Part shown: positions 2,895-44,268 of the stretch, one piece after another | Layout: each line of letters opens with the position of its first letter | How positions within the stretch are numbered: position 1 is the stretch's first letter | NCBI GenBank assembly: GCA_965644495.1 | Contig: CBFFSA010000001.1 | Location: 248,001 to 312,000, forward strand | Origin: Perkinsela sp. CCAP 1560/9 | Lineage: Eukaryota > Protista > Euglenozoa: Kinetoplastea | Direction: 5' to 3' | DNA length: 64,000 nt | Translations under genes and position numbers: made by a program | The notes under the pieces: generated by a model | Told to the model about the DNA's origin: nothing | The model's input: the letters and a program-made list of their open reading frames with translations, nothing else | Database searches by the model: none

Positions 2895-4109
2895 GGTGGG
2901 ATGGAACGAATAATGTACACTTTTTTTAAATAATTTTAAATTTTTATGAAATCCTTTTTTGTGTTTCCTAGGGTGATATGTATGAATTTTTTGGATTATT
3001 AGTCAATTTTTATCTTAAAATTACGGCTAGTATTGCTTCTCTAAGGTTTCAATGAACTGCACAGGTTGCCCTCGTTTTGATTGCGCTGCTCGAATTCGCT
3101 TGACTTCAGTCGGCTCTGCCACAGAGGAAACGTGTATGTTGTGGATGCGAAACCACAAACTCACTGTACAAAGCGTTTCCTGCGAGCGTGGGCATGAGCG
3201 GGTATTGTGTAATCTGAAGGGAGGCAAGTTCCACTGCCCAGTACGCTCCTGCCGCAATTTGATGTCACAGGACGGTCCTCTCAAGCACTCAAAGACAAAG
3301 GTGTCCGCAAAGCAGATTCTAATTGGGATCGTTTCCTTTTCTTATAGCATGCTGGGAACAGAAGTTGCAAAGGAAGAAGAAGTCTCTCAAAGAACTGTAG
3401 TTTTGCAAAGCCAAATTATCGAAAAATCATTGTCTGAGGTTCATAAAATCCGTCAGCGGAACGCCGAGGGAACAGTATCCTTTATGCAAGTCGATGAGAC
3501 GTGGTTCTCAAAGATCAAGCGAGGGGGAAAAAACCGAAACCAGCGGGTACGCGCTGGTGGTAGCCAGATAGTTCAGACTCTGGCCGAATGTACTCGTGAC
3601 AGCAAGCTGACGGAGATACATGTCACGCCTGTGCCTCAAAAAAGCGCAGAACACTTAATTCCCCCCATCGAGGCTATGTGTGCCTCCTCGCGTACGCGGA
3701 TCCATACCGACGGGGCCAGGCACAACAATTTTCTTGAAGGAAAGTATCAATGGGATTCGGTTATCCACAGAAATGAGTGGATCAGTGATTCCGGTGTGCA
3801 CACTAACACCGTAGAAGGAGCAAACAGCATGTTGAAGAGAACTTTGACGCGTTGTGGCGGCCAACTTGGTAGAAGCAATGAAAACCGGCATGAGCGTGTG
3901 CGCGCCCTGGCAGAAAAATGTAACGGATCTCTGCGGGTGAATGGAGCAAGTGTTTTGAAGCGAGTTTTGGAGGATCTTCGCGTGTATTGTGCGCATTATG
4001 TTCTGCAGTAAGAAGCATATTTTTTGTTAGATAATGATCGAAGGGAAAATATCGTCTTTTTAAAAATTCTGAAAACTGAAATTTTGTACATTATTCGTTC
4101 AATCCGACC
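2895..4109 (+). mobile_element. Merlin (IS1016/IS1595-like) DNA transposon, apparently complete
   Basis: 25-bp TIRs GGTGGGATGGAACGAATAATGTACA (2895-2919) / GGTCGGATTGAACGAATAATGTACA (revcomp of 4085-4109); 8-bp TSD GAAAAAAA at 2887-2894 and 4110-4117; absent from the paralogous LRR copy 2 flank. Confidence 0.93.
3052..4011 (+). CDS. Merlin/IS1595-family DDE transposase
   Basis: 319 aa; Cys-rich N-terminal Zn ribbon, then VDET, HTDG and HTNTVEG(ANSMLK) catalytic motifs typical of DDE_Tnp_IS1595. Confidence 0.92.
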   Translation: MNCTGCPRFDCAARIRLTSVGSATEETCMLWMRNHKLTVQSVSCERGHERVLCNLKGGKFHCPVRSCRNLMSQDGPLKHSKTKVSAKQILIGIVSFSYSMLGTEVAKEEEVSQRTVVLQSQIIEKSLSEVHKIRQRNAEGTVSFMQVDETWFSKIKRGGKNRNQRVRAGGSQIVQTLAECTRDSKLTEIHVTPVPQKSAEHLIPPIEAMCASSRTRIHTDGARHNNFLEGKYQWDSVIHRNEWISDSGVHTNTVEGANSMLKRTLTRCGGQLGRSNENRHERVRALAEKCNGSLRVNGASVLKRVLEDLRVYCAHYVLQ

Positions 4110-4450: not shown

Positions 4451-4896
4451 TCAAGTGTTGTGCACAGTTGTACCTCGTTCGATACGCTGTGTTAGCTCGG
4501 TAATAGTTTTATCGCTTAATGGCAATTCCTCTGCAAGTGCCTTGCGAGTAGTCCCGCGTACCATGGACAGCACAACGTAGAACCCCTTTGCGCTCGCAGG
4601 CATGTTATCCTTCGTTCCTAGTTGAGATACAGAAGAAAGTTTAGCGTAGTTCTTGAGATATGGACCTAGGGCAGGAACACGTTTCTAGCACCTAGATGGA
4701 CATTTCAACATGCCAGCTTTAAGGTCTAGTACCATAACTACTTCCTTGCATTTGGGACAGACATGATTATTATAGACTACTCGATGTGTTATCAACTAAG
4801 CAGCTACAACGGCTTCATTGAAGGCATCTAAACCAAGAACAGTGCAGAGAACTGAACACAGAGAAAGTTCTCACACGCAGAACAGTTGAAATCCAT
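4451..4896 (-). pseudogene. Degenerate N-terminal fragment of a second, divergent Merlin transposase
   Basis: Manual minus-strand translation MDFNCSACENFLC.../...AA*LITHRVVYNNHVCPKC...LKCPSRC*...ALAEELPLSDKTITELTQRIE aligns with MNCTGCPRFDC...LWMRNHKL...FHCPVRSC...VAKEEEVSQRTV of 3052..4011; contains a frameshift and stops. Confidence 0.7.
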
Positions 4897-13928: not shown

Positions 13929-15551
13929 ATGTTATTACGCTCCGGTGTGTTTCACCTTCCCAAGAGTGTCTACGACCTGCTGGTCATCGGTGGCGGTAGT
14001 GGGGGGGTGGCCTGTGCGACCCAGGCGGCCAAACTCGGCGCCTCAGTGGCGCTGGTCGACTACGTCCCCCCGAGTCCCTACGGCACCTCCTGGGGTCTCG
14101 GCGGCACCTGTGTCAACGTTGGCTGCATCCCGAAGAAATTGTTTCATGTTGCCGCGCAGCAGGGTGAGATCCTTTCGCACATGGCACCGTATTTTGGCTG
14201 GGGTTTGTGTAATTCCGAAAAGGATAGTGTTCCGAGATATCGAATGCAGTGGAGCACACTTCGAGAGAATGTCACCAATTACATACGCTCGCTGAATTTT
14301 AGTACCCGAGTGGCGTGTCAGGAGTTAAACGTGGATTATGTGAATGCCAGAGCGTGGGTTACGGGGGAACACGGCCACGGGGCTTGTGTGGCGGTGAGGT
14401 GTACGGACCCCGATAGCTCCGAGAGCTCTACGACCATGCATGCTCGTCACGTGGTGGTGGCGACAGGGGGACGGCCGCAGTATCCCTCGATTCCGAGGGC
14501 CCAACGTTTTGGCATCACCTCCGATGATTTGTTTTGGTTGAACAAAGACCCAGAAAAGGTCGTGGTGGTGGGGGCAGGATACATTGCACTGGAGTGTGCT
14601 GGATTTCTAGGGAGCTTCGCGAAGTACGCATCTCATGAAGGGGAAAGGCCGTTGAACCGGCCCTCCGTGTTGGTTCGCTCTACCCCGCTGCGTGGTTTTG
14701 ACAAGGACGCTGTGGCCAGGGTCGTACAGTCCATGGCGGACTCAGTCGATTTCGTGTACGACCAACCAAAGGAATTAGTACGTGTGGAATCGAATGTTGC
14801 ATCAAATTCTCCAAAGCTTCGATTGCATACTATGAAGGGCGGTGTTATGGACTGTGATACGGTTCTGTTTGCGATGGGACGCCGCCCCCAAACTACGGGG
14901 TTGGGTTTCGACACGTTGGGCGTGAAAATCGATCCGAGCACACATCATATTATTACCGATGAATTTGCGAAGACCTCACACCCTCAGGTGTACGCCATTG
15001 GAGATGTCGTTCGTGGAGGTGCGGAACTTACCCCAGTCGCCATACGCTCGGGTCGAACACTGGCGAACAATCTGTTTTCAGAACGAGCCCGGGAGACGGT
15101 ACACTTTTTTGCTCAAGCCATGCCCACAACCGTATTCACACCTTTGGAGTACGGTCGCATTGGCCCGAGTGAGGAACAAGCGTGTGCGCTCTATCCTGAA
15201 AAACAAATCGAAGTCTATCACACTGCCTTTTGCCCCCTTGAGTGGACGCTACCCGGCCTCCCACGTGACTTGTGCTTTCTCAAAGTCATCACACGGCGAG
15301 ATCTCGATGCTCCTTTGGATGCAGACAACGCCCGAGGGAGGGATACGAATGAAACCGTCATTGGTTGGCACCTTACGTGTCCCCATGCGGGGGAGATTAC
15401 GCAAGGCATAGCTGTTGCCATGCACGCCGGGTTGACGCTACGAACACTGCGGCAAACGATGGGCATTCATCCTACCATGGCGGAGTGTATAGGCAGCCTT
15501 GTGCGAAAGCGAGATTTTCCTACCCCAAAGGTCCCGGGATGCTGAGGGTAG
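13929..15551 (+). CDS. TXNRD: High-Mr (animal-type) selenocysteine-containing thioredoxin reductase; Sec encoded by TGA 15543-15545
   Basis: GGGSGG FAD motif, WGLGGTCVNVGCIPKK redox centre, GAGYIALE NADPH motif, GIHPT; ends GGA TGC TGA GGG TAG = G-C-U-G-stop; SECIS 33 nt downstream. Confidence 0.93.
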
Positions 15552-15583
15552 GGAAGGGAATGTGAGCCGTCACTCCTTCGCTC

Positions 15584-15653
15584 CATTGGGTTCTTCTTGT
15601 GAAGTTGTGTGCCTAAACCTTTAGGTGGCGCATAATGGATTTTGAACCGAATG
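15584..15653 (+). promoter_or_regulatory. Eukaryotic SECIS element, type II, GUGA core variant
   Basis: Helix I CATTGGGTTC (15584-93) / GAACCGAATG (15644-53); core GTGAA (15599-603) / GGAT (15637-40); 10-bp helix II GTTGTGTGCC / GGCGCATAAT; unpaired AA at 15615-16 and apical mini-helix ACCT/AGGT. Confidence 0.9.
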
Positions 15654-15824
15654 ATGTGGTAGTGACGACGAACACTGTAGTGCGGTTAGATAATGGTAAC
15701 AAAGTGGTAAATTTGGTTTTAGATAAAAGATAATTCCTTAAAAAACTTTAACTTGTCACACCTTTTTACCACACTCATTTCTCATCAAAAACATATTATC
15801 TACTGGGTAGTATCTACTTATTTT

Positions 15825-18800
15825 ATGAGCGAATTCTCCTTACACTCCGCTCGTGTCAAAGCCCTGAGCTTTCACGCCGAACGTCCCTGGATCCTTGTCG
15901 GGCTGCACGACGGAAAACTCGAGATTTGGGACTACCAGAACCAAACCCTCCAAGAACGATACGCAAATGAGCACCAGGGCGCCGTCCGCGCGGTGTGCTT
16001 CCACCCCCACCAGCCCCTCTTCGCCTCCGGGGGGGATGACACCAAAGTTCGTCTGTGGAGTTACGCTCAGCGACGGATCACAGCCACCCTGGTCGGCCAC
16101 TTGGACTACGTCCGCTGCGTCTCCTTTCACACCGAGCAGCCCTGGTTGCTCTCCGGGAGTGACGACCAGGTGCTACGGCTGTGGAACTGGCAGTCCCGCA
16201 CCTGCCTCGGGGTACTCGCCGGGCACAACCACTACGTCATGTGTGGGGTGTTTCACCCGAGTGGGCAAAGCCCCGATTTAGTGGCTTCCGGGTCGTTGGA
16301 TCAAACCATCCGGATTTGGGATATTACCGGCGTGCGTACACGGAAGCCAGCGCCAAGTTTGTCCGAGCTCGCGAGAAGTGCCGGGGTGTTGTCAGATGGT
16401 ACGGATTCCTACGGTTCCGATTCTCGTTCCTTGCCCGCAGCTCTTCCGTTGCTTGCACCGGATTTGTTTGCGAACGAAATATTTGTGAGATGTATTCTGG
16501 AGGGGCATGAGCGAGCCGTGAATAGCGTTGCGTTTCATCCCACCCGTCCTCTGTTGGTCAGTGGCTCGGATGACAAAACGATTCGAGTGTGGAGTATTGA
16601 TGAGGCGTGTTCGACGACAATGATGTACAATGAAACAGCACCTTTCCCTGGATATGAGCTAGAGCAGCTGAGGGGTCACACAGGAAATGTAACCTGTGTA
16701 CTACTAGACGTCGAAACCTCGAATATTCTAAGTGCATCGGAGGACGGAACAATACGGATGTGGAATACCGAAAATGGCAACGCAATCAAGACTATCAGCC
16801 GACCTGGTGGATTGCATGCCGGTCAGGTAGGCCGTATCTGGTCCCTAGCAGTGAATGAAAACGGTCTCATAGCTTTTGGGTATGATCACGGGTTTGGCGT
16901 CACGAGACTACGATCCGAGCACCCGGCATATTCACGAGGCGTACATTTTAACGCAGAACCTGGGCATGTAGCTGGTCTGTATTACGTACGGGAAGGAACA
17001 CTCTACACTTATAATTTCGACACTAGAAAGGAAAGCATCATTTGTTCGTTACGCCGAAAAGGAATCCCAAATCATTTGTACTACGTAGAGAATGTTGAAG
17101 CAGCACTTTGTATATTTGATGAAACAAGCCCGCGATATGAACTTTATACGATTGGATCAAAAACACCCACTCAACGGGCAGCAGTAGAGATGCGCAAGGG
17201 TTATTATTCGAGCACAGCGTTTTGCGGAAGCGGGCGTATTATCGCATTGGATCAATCGAATCTATTGATCAAGAATCTTCAAAACGAAACAGTAAGCAGC
17301 ATGCCATTGACCGAGATTAAAAGGGGCGAATCTTTTCATGGTGAAATTGATCCCGCTTCTACGGTGCTAAATGGTGGATTAACAGAGATTCATACATTGT
17401 ACACCTTGTCTGGGTCCGAAAATAACGTCCTTGCAAGCACACCGACACATATTCTTTTATTAGAAGTCGATCTCAATGGAAAAGCTTCTGTAATTTCCTG
17501 TAGAGATTCTGTTAAAGATCTAGTCGGCGTGCATTCGCAAGATGATTATGCATACACCTCTGAAGACAACACCGTTCAGCTGCGGTCCGTTATAGTCTTA
17601 GTAGCTAAAAATGAGTTGATCGTGTGTGACAGTACTCGTCTTGGAACTCTTTTTAAAGTGAAGGAGCTTCATCGAGAAATCACAAGCTGTGTTTTTGGAA
17701 ATGTAAGTCGCCAGAAGCACCGAACGTCACAATTATCTTCCCTACCTTTAACCAACGCAATCTTTTTTGCAACTACTGCTCATCTTAAATTCGTTCTTTC
17801 AAACGGTCACGTAGGTACGGTTCGTGAAATTTCCTCAAAGAAGAAGCTGTATCTTGCTGCAGTATTCGAAAAAACAGCGTTTTTTATTACAGACGCATCT
17901 TCGGTTTGTCCTTTGGAAATTGATCTCACGGAACTCCATTTAAAGCAAGCCCTTTCATTTCACGAACACGCCGCCGTAAATGAGATCCTTCGTGGGAAGA
18001 AGGTACACGGACAAGCGCTCGCTGCCTATCTGCTCAGCAAGAAAAATCTTCGACCCATGGCAGAATATTTTGTGAGAGATTCACGGAGTAAATTTTTTCT
18101 TTCTTTAGAAAAAGGTAAGCTGAACGAAGCCAGGAAGTATGCGAAGGAATTGGATACTTCGGATATTTGGCAGCACTTTTCACGTGCTGCATGGGAACAT
18201 GGCGACGCGCTTTCTGCTCTTGAGGCATACGAAAGTACAAACGATGAAAATTCTCAAGCTGAAACGCATCTCCTACTTGGCAATTTAGAGAGTTTGGAAA
18301 CACTCGTGGAAAAATCCACATGCCCCCACCTTACCACTACCTACTCTATGATCCTGGGGAATCATACGAAACAGTTAGATGTATTGGTGCAATCAGGGCA
18401 GTACGCTCTGGCGCTTGCTCTGGCGAGAACGAGACACATGGGTAGCGATATCATTCAAGAGCTTGAAGAGAAGTTCAAGAATCGTGTACAATGTATCTAC
18501 GACTCCAGAGATAACGACAAAGGTGCGGATAATGAATGTGAGGCGCAATTGTGTCTGGATAATCTGATCCAACGTTGCGCAAACCTAGAAACCCAAAAGC
18601 AGCCCTCGGGGCTGTTCAGCATGCAGGATTCTTCTCTAGAGTTCGCTGAGTTGCGCAAAATCGCAGTGTGGCCTCACCTTGAAGACGAAACGGAAAATGT
18701 TGACGAATTTTATCAGCATGATTTGGTCAAAGACTTTCCAGAAAAGACAACAAGTGAAACTTTTTCTGATTCATATAAGAATCCTACCCGCACAAAGGAG

Positions 18801-19823
18801 CGTGTTCTGGACAACGAAATGCATTTTACGGACCATTCGAGTTTACGTTCTCCGAGCACGCGCACCGCTAGTGAAGCTTGGGATCTCGAATTAGATATGG
18901 AAGAGAAGCAAACCGACCAGTTCGATCAATGGGATGCCATGAGTGACTACGAATTCGACAAAAATCAGGGCAGGGATGATATGCCCATCTACGCCATGCT
19001 AACCGGGGATGGTGATCGGGCGATGCATTTATTACTCGAGCAATGCGGTATATGCCACTTTGATTGCATTCTACCGTACATGGGGAAATTGAGGGATGTC
19101 GAAGGGCCATTGGGCAATGCTTCTTTTGATGATCTTACCAAGCGCCTTCCCATCACTCGCGAGTTTATTGATTTCCAACTCAATGAAGCGATGAAATTAA
19201 CCACAGAAGGGAAATTTTTGGATGCGTCCCAAACTTTTCATAAAGTACTTTGTACATATCCCACAATTGTAGTGCCATCCTCAGAGGAAGCTCAAGAAAT
19301 CGAATCTAAGGTATTCTTACCAGCCGTCTCATACATCCAAGCACTCAATACGGAATTATATCGACGAAAGCACTTAGCTACACACCCAGGAGACATTCCA
19401 ACCTCGCTTAAGCTGGCTTTGTATTTCACTCACTTTGACCTGCAGCAAGAGCACTTAATATTGGCTCTTCGAAGTGCTATGGTGCTATGTTACAAAGCTG
19501 GAAATTTTGGTCTTGCGACAAATGTAGCAGCGCGTCTTTTGGAGTTCTCACTTCCTCCTGCAGTAGAGCAGCAAGCATGTAAATTAATCAGCACACAAAA
19601 ATTGGACAACGCTCACCAGGTAGAGTATGATCCAACGAACATGTTTACTGTGTGCTCCGCGTCTCATTGTGAAATAAAAAGCTCAGAAAAGGATTCGGTC
19701 GTTTGGTGCAAATACTGTGTGTCTCCTGCCTTGGTGCGTTTCGAAGGCGAACTTTGTGAAGTTTGTCGAATGTCAAAGTATAATCGTAAGCTCTTTACAC
19801 GGAATTTGCACAATGTTTGGTAG
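15825..19823 (+). CDS. COPA: Coatomer subunit alpha
   Basis: N-terminal WD40 (SARVKALSFH..RPWIL, GHLDYVR, WNWQSR, GHNHYVMC); C-terminal alpha-COP domain (LALYFTHFDLQ..HLILALRSAM, YDPTNMFTVC). Confidence 0.95.
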   Translation: MSEFSLHSARVKALSFHAERPWILVGLHDGKLEIWDYQNQTLQERYANEHQGAVRAVCFHPHQPLFASGGDDTKVRLWSYAQRRITATLVGHLDYVRCVSFHTEQPWLLSGSDDQVLRLWNWQSRTCLGVLAGHNHYVMCGVFHPSGQSPDLVASGSLDQTIRIWDITGVRTRKPAPSLSELARSAGVLSDGTDSYGSDSRSLPAALPLLAPDLFANEIFVRCILEGHERAVNSVAFHPTRPLLVSGSDDKTIRVWSIDEACSTTMMYNETAPFPGYELEQLRGHTGNVTCVLLDVETSNILSASEDGTIRMWNTENGNAIKTISRPGGLHAGQVGRIWSLAVNENGLIAFGYDHGFGVTRLRSEHPAYSRGVHFNAEPGHVAGLYYVREGTLYTYNFDTRKESIICSLRRKGIPNHLYYVENVEAALCIFDETSPRYELYTIGSKTPTQRAAVEMRKGYYSSTAFCGSGRIIALDQSNLLIKNLQNETVSSMPLTEIKRGESFHGEIDPASTVLNGGLTEIHTLYTLSGSENNVLASTPTHILLLEVDLNGKASVISCRDSVKDLVGVHSQDDYAYTSEDNTVQLRSVIVLVAKNELIVCDSTRLGTLFKVKELHREITSCVFGNVSRQKHRTSQLSSLPLTNAIFFATTAHLKFVLSNGHVGTVREISSKKKLYLAAVFEKTAFFITDASSVCPLEIDLTELHLKQALSFHEHAAVNEILRGKKVHGQALAAYLLSKKNLRPMAEYFVRDSRSKFFLSLEKGKLNEARKYAKELDTSDIWQHFSRAAWEHGDALSALEAYESTNDENSQAETHLLLGNLESLETLVEKSTCPHLTTTYSMILGNHTKQLDVLVQSGQYALALALARTRHMGSDIIQELEEKFKNRVQCIYDSRDNDKGADNECEAQLCLDNLIQRCANLETQKQPSGLFSMQDSSLEFAELRKIAVWPHLEDETENVDEFYQHDLVKDFPEKTTSETFSDSYKNPTRTKERVLDNEMHFTDHSSLRSPSTRTASEAWDLELDMEEKQTDQFDQWDAMSDYEFDKNQGRDDMPIYAMLTGDGDRAMHLLLEQCGICHFDCILPYMGKLRDVEGPLGNASFDDLTKRLPITREFIDFQLNEAMKLTTEGKFLDASQTFHKVLCTYPTIVVPSSEEAQEIESKVFLPAVSYIQALNTELYRRKHLATHPGDIPTSLKLALYFTHFDLQQEHLILALRSAMVLCYKAGNFGLATNVAARLLEFSLPPAVEQQACKLISTQKLDNAHQVEYDPTNMFTVCSASHCEIKSSEKDSVVWCKYCVSPALVRFEGELCEVCRMSKYNRKLFTRNLHNVW

Positions 19824-43796: not shown

Positions 43797-44268
43797 AACG
43801 GGGGCTCGGGATAACATACCTGTAACACGTTAACATACCGGGGGGGTATGTTATTGTGAACAGGGGTGGATAACACACCCCCCCTCTGGATTTTGGAGTT
43901 TAGGAGTCAATTTGTTTTTGAGATTTTTTTACATGTGTAATACAGATCATTTTTTTGTCAACATGAGCACTCAAGAACTGATTGGTATTCATGAAGAAAT
44001 TCCAAGCGAGGTTGTTTCGTCGGAGGAGGATGAAGAGGAAGACGAGGAGGGAGAAGAGGAGGAAGACATTGACAATTCAGGAGTATTTTCGAATACATAG
44101 TTGTCCTGAAATTGTGGAGTAAAATATATTGGAGCAATTTTTTGAATTGGTGCAATTTTTTGAATTCTTTAAAAAAATGATGGCATAAAAGTTAACATAC
44201 CTGTAACAGCATAACATACCTGTAACACGATAACATACCGGGGGGGTATGTTATCCAGTAACACCGTT
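43797..44268. mobile_element. MITE of the AAC...GTT / TA-TSD family (ATAACATACC core)
   Basis: TA at 43795-96 and 44269-70; 24-bp TIRs 19/24; AACATACCTGTAAC repeats and TAACATACC-Gn-GGTATGTTA palindromes; internal acidic ORF remnant. Confidence 0.8.

Follow-up and report, generated by a model that had tools for sequence, protein, structure and literature searches.

A 64,000-nucleotide stretch of the genome of Perkinsela sp. CCAP 1560/9 (assembly GCA_965644495.1, contig CBFFSA010000001.1, positions 248,001 to 312,000; hereafter the window) carries a gene, TrxR-A, whose product is very probably both a high-molecular-weight NADPH:thioredoxin reductase (TrxR) and a selenoprotein. The standard open reading frame (ORF) spans 13929-15545 on the forward strand, with 538 codons at 13929-15542 followed by TGA, and its translation ends in ...KVPGC. 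The DNA at 15537-15551 reads GGA TGC TGA GGG TAG, so that both the ...VPGC ending and the codons after it are as the preliminary description of the window had given them. The evidence below makes it almost certain that this TGA, an apparent stop, is read as selenocysteine (Sec). Four points are predictions from sequence: which residue is placed at the UGA, whether the mRNA includes a Sec insertion sequence (SECIS), which substrate the enzyme reduces and in which compartment it works. In the Sec reading, the gene has the following features:

13929..15551, forward strand: TrxR-A coding sequence, with 538 standard codons, the Sec TGA (15543-15545), Gly GGG (15546-15548) and the TAG stop (15549-15551)
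14109..14126, forward strand: N-terminal redox-active disulfide CVNVGC, residues 61-66, placed by alignments
15537..15548, forward strand: predicted C-terminal redox centre Gly-Cys-Sec-Gly (GGA TGC TGA GGG), read from the DNA; Cys-TGA-GGN-stop is also found in seven related genes

By homology, TrxR-A is a large, animal-type (high-molecular-weight) thioredoxin reductase. The class I pyridine nucleotide-disulfide oxidoreductase fold, with its FAD, NADPH and dimerisation domains, was recognised by Pfam (PF07992, Pyr_redox_2, 1e-50; PF00070, 4e-11; PF02852, Pyr_redox_dim, 6e-19) and by an end-to-end alignment to TrxR2. The top match among solved structures was mouse mitochondrial TrxR2 (1zdl, 9.8e-113), and this alignment extends to the last residue of the query, which meets the ...TGC located just before Sec in the mouse enzyme. 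Other strong matches in the PDB were schistosome thioredoxin-glutathione reductases (TGR) and human and rat TrxR1, the best entries of these three kinds scoring between 1e-113 and 1e-105. E-values for TrxR and TGR structures ranged from 1e-113 to 1e-88, compared with 3e-60 for glutathione reductase and 7e-54 for trypanothione reductase (TryR). The CVNVGC motif is invariant across six aligned kinetoplastid TrxRs and matches the same motif in mouse TrxR2, while alignments to PDB entries and kinetoplastid homologues show that the GxGxxG and HPTxxE motifs are also kept. A Sec-type TrxR, as first proposed for this locus, is supported by the TrxR2 match (about 1e-112), by the UGA-Gly-stop ending of all relatives that we read and, as described below, by a SECIS and Sec machinery in a kinetoplastid genome.

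The Cys-TGA-Gly-stop ending and the hairpin behind it

The DNA behind the coding sequence was read in the nearest relatives of the window gene, giving eight genes in total when the window gene is included. All eight end in Cys-TGA-GGN-TAA/TAG, and between them they use all four Gly codons:

TrxR-A, window gene, contig 1 of this genome: TGA GGG TAG
TrxR-B (L105), 51% identical to TrxR-A, contig 4 of this genome: TGA GGT TAA
L005, European Nucleotide Archive (ENA) metagenome assembly: TGA GGA TAA
L006, Joint Genome Institute (JGI) metagenome: TGA GGA TAA
L007, ENA assembly ERZ25071330: TGA GGA TAG
L008, Perkinsela sp. CCAP 1560/4: TGA GGA TAG
L113, ENA assembly ERZ25071330: TGA GGA TAA
L114, Logan contig of a public run: TGA GGC TAA

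The remainder of each 3′ untranslated region (UTR) could not be aligned between genes. Synonymous variation in a Gly codon that sits behind a supposed stop, and has a further stop right after it, indicates that the codon is translated. Nearly all of the best 120 database homologues finish in ...GC, as truncated Sec-TrxRs do, and the insect homologues among them end in ...SCCS, an ending of Cys-type large TrxRs. A scan of metagenomes for further close relatives returned none above 42% identity.

The kinetoplastid TrxRs that we read are probably annotated two residues short, as had been predicted for this gene, and this includes a deposited protein. The "thioredoxin reductase" of Perkinsela sp. 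CCAP 1560/4 (GCA_001235845.1; L008/L009) stops at ...KGNC, with the gene end at 4551, and the DNA goes on with TGA GGA TAG and a GUGAA/GGAU hairpin at 4629-4676. This DNA and the hairpin suggest that the public annotation probably lacks the last two residues. In L113, a 999-kb contig of a Perkinsela-like assembly, a B-type TrxR ends in GNC-TGA-GGA-TAA. The order of genes at this locus (BUD31, RPS26, an unknown gene, TrxR and a cyclin) is syntenic with Perkinsela. The same assembly, ERZ25071330, holds an A-type TrxR (L007) besides the B-type one.

Behind the TAG of TrxR-A lies a hairpin with the architecture of a type 2 SECIS:

15584..15653, forward strand: predicted type 2 SECIS with helix I, internal loop, GUGAA/GGAU core, 10-bp helix II, unpaired UAA and 3-bp mini-stem (Rfam SECIS_1, RNAfold and constrained fold)
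15584-15587/15650-15653 and 15589-15593/15644-15648, forward strand: helix I (RNAfold)
15599..15603, forward strand: 5′ side of the core, G-UGA-A (Rfam SECIS_1, fold)
15604-15613/15627-15636, forward strand: helix II, 10 bp (RNAfold)
15614-15616, forward strand: unpaired UAA (RNAfold)
15617-15619/15624-15626, forward strand: mini-stem of 3 bp with a 4-nt loop (RNAfold)
15637..15640, forward strand: 3′ side of the core, G-GA-U (Rfam SECIS_1, fold)

Rfam SECIS_1 (RF00031) matches 15589-15648 on the forward strand over the full model length, with 34.8 bits and an E-value of 2.8e-5 in the 501 nt searched. Across the whole 21-Mb genome, this is the top match to the model. RNAfold gave -26.6 kcal/mol for 15583-15655 (z = -4.5), and one of 200 shuffled sequences was as stable. 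The fold reproduces the complete type II anatomy that had been described from the letters. The distances given at that time, 33 nt from the stop and about 53 nt from the UGA, were close, and the exact values are 32 nt from TAG to hairpin start and 54 nt from the TGA codon to the core UGA. The element had also been called a GUGA variant. A G does precede the UGA, yet the core still falls within the published consensus UGAN/KGAW (SECISearch3; PMC3753652). Since UGAA/GGAU fits this consensus, GUGA deviates only at the A that usually precedes the core; AUGA is described as highly conserved in human SECIS elements (PMC2761289).

To gauge how often such structures arise, we turned to a simple structural scanner of our own, applied to 260 kb of the genome. 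SECIS-shaped sites occurred at about 0.04 per kb, and the window site alone had the GUGAA/GGAU signature. Given these counts, its position within 100 nt of Cys-TGA-Gly-stop cannot be put down to chance. A second SECIS-shaped site in the window, at 43857-43922, was rejected, since it falls within a palindrome with G7/C7 caps and the ORF before it is an ordinary one. Palindromes capped in this way recur in the genome (window 43840-43890; L004:2260-2367) and yield spurious miRNA-family and SECIS-shaped matches. Other genomic matches to SECIS_1 (L003, 28 bits; L004, 24.5 bits) were rejected as chance, as they belong to one repeat family and have no selenoprotein ORF. This repeat, common to L003:1453-1650 on contig 11 and L004:1453-1650 on contig 4, adjoins long (GA/CT)n-like tracts.

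By our own structural reading, six elements share a like architecture with GUGAA...GGAU (GGAG in L006). Five of them are located in the 3′ UTRs of TrxR genes (the window gene, TrxR-B, L006, L007 and Perkinsela CCAP 1560/4), and the sixth is a candidate with a long apical extension behind the selenophosphate synthetase gene (SPS2) of this genome. The relatives have UGA-to-core spacings of 69, 78 and 99 nt. In L113, the 3′ UTR hairpin (about 3136-3186) has GGGAA in place of GUGAA, which we take to resemble the GGGA-type SECIS of Toxoplasma. The GUGA core is thus not peculiar to the window gene, and a non-AUGA core appears to be lineage-wide. The GUGAA/GGAU core explains why most of these elements escape generic SECIS models. 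MAFFT alignments of the elements were structurally inconsistent and yielded no lineage covariance model. With the window element as its single source, a covariance model proved too sequence-specific and was abandoned, the relatives scoring at most 11 bits and mixing with noise.

Selenocysteine machinery, paralogues and descent

Five of the six components of Sec decoding that had been named for a search were found in the genome (tRNA-Sec, SepSecS, SPS2, eEFSec and SBP2); the sixth, PSTK, was not:

Contig 8, 166475-166559: tRNA-Sec(UCA), 62.8 bits; ARAGORN calls SeC(tca)
Contig 6: SepSecS, 363 bits
Contig 8, about 179.4-180.7 kb, reverse strand (L012: TGA 2286-2284, stop 1075): SPS2/SelD, 207 bits
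Contig 1: eEFSec, 591 residues, 1.2e-90 to human eEFSec 5izk
Contig 1, 846724-847881 (L022:730-1887): SBP2 candidate, 385 residues, L7Ae region matching human SBP2 7zjw_B at 1.9e-18
Contig 4, 910275-911852, forward strand (L105:1483-3060): TrxR-B, a large TrxR ending KSGC-TGA-GGT-TAA
Contig 1, 860628-862127, forward strand (L106:1468-2967): TryR, 3.7e-155 to the T. brucei enzyme; T. cruzi also about 1e-155

The tRNA-Sec gene sits within a cluster of six tRNAs (L001:870-1586, contig 8, about 165.8-166.6 kb), 2 nt after a same-strand tRNA-Ile(UAU), and SPS2 is located about 13 kb from it on the same contig. SPS2 has a single in-frame TGA at its catalytic Sec/Cys position (...LRG-U-GCKVP), which suggests that SPS2 is itself a selenoprotein here. 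At this position, trypanosomatid SPS2 presumably has Cys. The candidate SECIS behind SPS2 (L012 886-805, about 190 nt after the stop) has GUGAA...GGAU, an 8-bp helix II, unpaired AA and a long apical stem, and was not reported by Rfam. In the SBP2 candidate, the alignment with the RNA-binding region of human SBP2 is confined to the C-terminal 150 or so residues, and the N-terminal part is low-complexity and unmatched. The sole weak KTI12-type/PSTK match resembles, by eye only, an adenylate-kinase/Fap7-type ORF and was rejected. SelK and SelT were not detected in the genome with short Pfam models, a blank that is uninformative, as a control showed for SelK.

The second TrxR, TrxR-B, is followed 175 nt past its TGA by a type 2 SECIS-like hairpin (L105:3229-3275) with GUGAA/GGAU, a 12-bp helix II containing one bulge, AA and a GGG/CCC mini-stem; Rfam SECIS_1 missed this hairpin. 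The E-values of about 1e-155 for TryR against the T. brucei and T. cruzi enzymes place the genome among the kinetoplastids, in agreement with its first characterisation as kinetoplastid-like. Contig 1, which is 4.1 Mb long, carries TrxR-A, TryR, SBP2 and eEFSec. As TryR shares this contig with TrxR-A, both reductase systems coexist. Among named organisms, those closest in SepSecS and the TrxRs are Perkinsela and two free-living prokinetoplastids, PhM-4 and PhF-6, the identities being only 42-58%. The genome is thus that of neither a trypanosomatid nor the Perkinsela strain CCAP 1560/4.

We determined how the reductases are related with a quick maximum-likelihood tree of 58 sequences, with Shimodaira-Hasegawa-like approximate likelihood ratio test (SH-aLRT) support only. 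A euglenozoan clade (SH-aLRT 97) contained Euglena, a B clade and an A clade. The B clade comprised the contig-4 TrxR-B, Perkinsela (whose annotated gene is the B paralogue), PhM-4 copy b and P0024. The six members of the A clade (SH-aLRT 99) were the window gene, P0002, P0003, P0004, PhM-4 copy a and PhF-6. This topology supports vertical descent of the TrxR with an old duplication, rather than transfer from a host.

TrxR-A would end in PGCUG, as would the A clade in general. Four of the six A-clade proteins have a short basic N-terminus of the M(L/F)(L/R)R type, and TrxR-B begins MTSPDTPP... From general knowledge of kinetoplastid presequences, the basic N-terminus on A and its absence from TrxR-B would make A mitochondrial and B cytosolic, a guess that could equally well go either way.

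Alternative readings

If TrxR-A is decoded as a selenoprotein, the ribosome would reach the UGA at 15543-15545, and the SECIS in the 3′ UTR, starting 32 nt past the TAG, would be bound by the short SBP2 of this genome. SBP2 would then recruit eEFSec with Sec-tRNA(Sec)(UCA). Sec and then Gly would be inserted before termination at TAG, giving a 540-residue product ending in -Gly-Cys-Sec-Gly. The CVNVGC disulfide of one subunit would receive electrons from NADPH by way of FAD and hand them to the Cys-Sec selenenylsulfide, carried on the flexible tail of the partner subunit, which would in turn reduce thioredoxin.

Several observations weigh against this reading. The SECIS_1 score of 34.8 bits is 0.2 bit below the curated gathering cut-off of 35, and the UGA-to-core spacing of 54 nt is short. 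Among relatives, SECIS_1 gave only 16.6 bits for L006 and nothing for Perkinsela CCAP 1560/4 or TrxR-B, so that SECIS calls outside the window depend on how we ourselves read the structures. For L005, the closest relative, a contig of 2x coverage yielded no convincing SECIS. Neither PF08433 nor TIGR03575 detected PSTK, and its family namesake KTI12 was not clearly detected either, so this blank says little. Finally, the quick tree is the sole tree.

The gene could encode Sec by descent and yet be poorly decoded, with the SECIS lost by polyadenylation or too near the UGA, so that mostly truncated protein is made. Minimum spacings between UGA and SECIS in mammalian reporters are about 51-111 nt, which puts the 54 nt found here near the lower end, and the intergenic stretch is only 273 nt long. 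It ends at the next gene:

15825..19823, forward strand: WD40 coatomer-alpha-like ORF, whose first ATG at 15825 bounds the TrxR-A 3′ UTR (ORF and DNA)

Pyrimidine-rich runs occur at about 15730-15790, with an AG at 15809-15810, and more than 75 nt separate the hairpin end from this pyrimidine tract and AG. This layout is compatible with a short 3′ UTR containing the SECIS but proves nothing by itself, the splice-acceptor and poly(A) positions being putative. The spacings of the relatives are also short (69, 78 and 99 nt), which suggests that a compact arrangement is normal in the clade. Considering also that neither the ORF nor the SECIS is damaged and that the Gly codon has been conserved, poor decoding seems very unlikely.

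A true stop at the TGA would leave an enzyme ending in ...Pro-Gly-Cys, which would be Cys-only or tail-less, or else inactive on thioredoxin, next to a fortuitous hairpin. The standard ORF call does end at the TGA, and the SECIS score is slightly below the Rfam cut-off. Conversely, GGN and a stop directly follow the TGA in all eight related genes with four different Gly codons, and no other site in the 21 Mb matches the SECIS model better than this hairpin. The decoding machinery is present save for PSTK, and known Cys-type large TrxRs have other ends, such as the insect ...SCCS. We consider a true stop most improbable.

Acquisition of the TrxR by horizontal transfer, for instance from an amoebozoan host, had been raised in the preliminary description, which suspected a Perkinsela-like endosymbiont, and trypanosomatids do lack TrxR, but such a transfer is hardly credible: the tree groups the gene with prokinetoplastid, Perkinsela and Euglena TrxRs (SH-aLRT 97-99), the gene lies on a 4.1-Mb contig alongside TryR, SBP2 and eEFSec, and Butenko et al. 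2020 (PMC7052976) infer an ancestral TrxR lost in trypanosomatids alone.

Returning to the selenoprotein reading, a broader scenario can be put forward tentatively, and we would sooner doubt than assert it as a whole. Early kinetoplastids may have possessed two Sec-TrxRs, one mitochondrial (PGCUG) and one cytosolic, beside TryR. A lineage-wide non-AUGA SECIS core (GUGA, with GGGA in one relative) would have been read by a minimal SBP2 of 385 residues, with UGA-to-SECIS spacing down to 54 nt. Trypanosomatids would later have lost both TrxRs and replaced the Sec of SPS2 with Cys.

Comparison with known systems

TrxR has been reported in non-trypanosomatid kinetoplastids, where it coexists with TryR, and its loss was inferred in the trypanosomatid ancestor (Butenko et al. 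2020; PMC7052976). The TrxRs of that study, including that of Perkinsela CCAP 1560/4, share with TrxR-A the family, the euglenozoan lineage by our tree and the coexistence with TryR. By the tree, the window gene is the A paralogue and the annotated gene of Perkinsela CCAP 1560/4 the B paralogue. The word stem "selen" is absent from PMC7052976. Among the matches listed in a full-text literature search, no paper joined selenoproteins with bodonids, Bodo saltans, Trypanoplasma, Prokinetoplastina or diplonemids. Work on kinetoplastid selenoproteins covers trypanosomatids, with SelK, SelT and SelTryp (Lobanov 2006, PMC1557815; PMC12153298).

The presence of TrxR in non-trypanosomatid kinetoplastids is thus already known, and large TrxRs normally end in GCUG. 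Possible novelties are the Sec nature of the TrxR in this lineage, the two paralogues, the Sec-type SPS2 and the lineage-wide non-AUGA core. The Sec nature of the enzyme seems to be unstated in the literature searched, yet it is expected of a large TrxR in a Sec-using organism. None of these findings overturns current understanding. For annotation, they would correct a systematic error by which the kinetoplastid TrxRs that we read lose two residues that form the active site. For redox evolution in Euglenozoa, the thioredoxin arm lost by trypanosomatids appears to have been selenium-dependent and duplicated. With their consistent GUGAA/GGAU core, these elements form a small natural set on which to test what SBP2 requires ahead of the UGA.

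The genome shares its Sec decoding with trypanosomatids, which also have tRNA-Sec, eEFSec, SBP2, SepSecS and SPS2. Trypanosomatids lack TrxR, whereas this genome has two predicted Sec-TrxRs and a Sec-type SPS2, a selenoproteome unlike the trypanosomatid set of SelK, SelT and SelTryp. The distance from UGA to SECIS is 200-1100 nt in trypanosomatids (PMC1557815), compared with 54 nt for TrxR-A and 175 nt for TrxR-B. With the eukaryotic SECIS consensus (RF00031; UGAN/KGAW), the window element shares UGAA/GGAU, helix II, the unpaired AA and the type 2 mini-stem, and it differs in the G before the UGA.

The closest counterpart among known enzymes is mammalian TrxR2 (TXNRD2; 1zdl, 3dgz), which has the same fold, domain order, CVNVGC motif, His-Glu dyad and short N-terminal extension. 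Both genes would yield Gly-Cys-Sec-Gly from TGC TGA GGN stop, with a type 2 SECIS in the 3′ UTR. Compared with mouse TrxR2, TrxR-A has several extra insertions, for example around residues 229-243 and 457-472. It further differs from mammalian TrxR2 in the Pro before GCUG, in a GUGA rather than AUGA core and in a much shorter spacing between UGA and SECIS.

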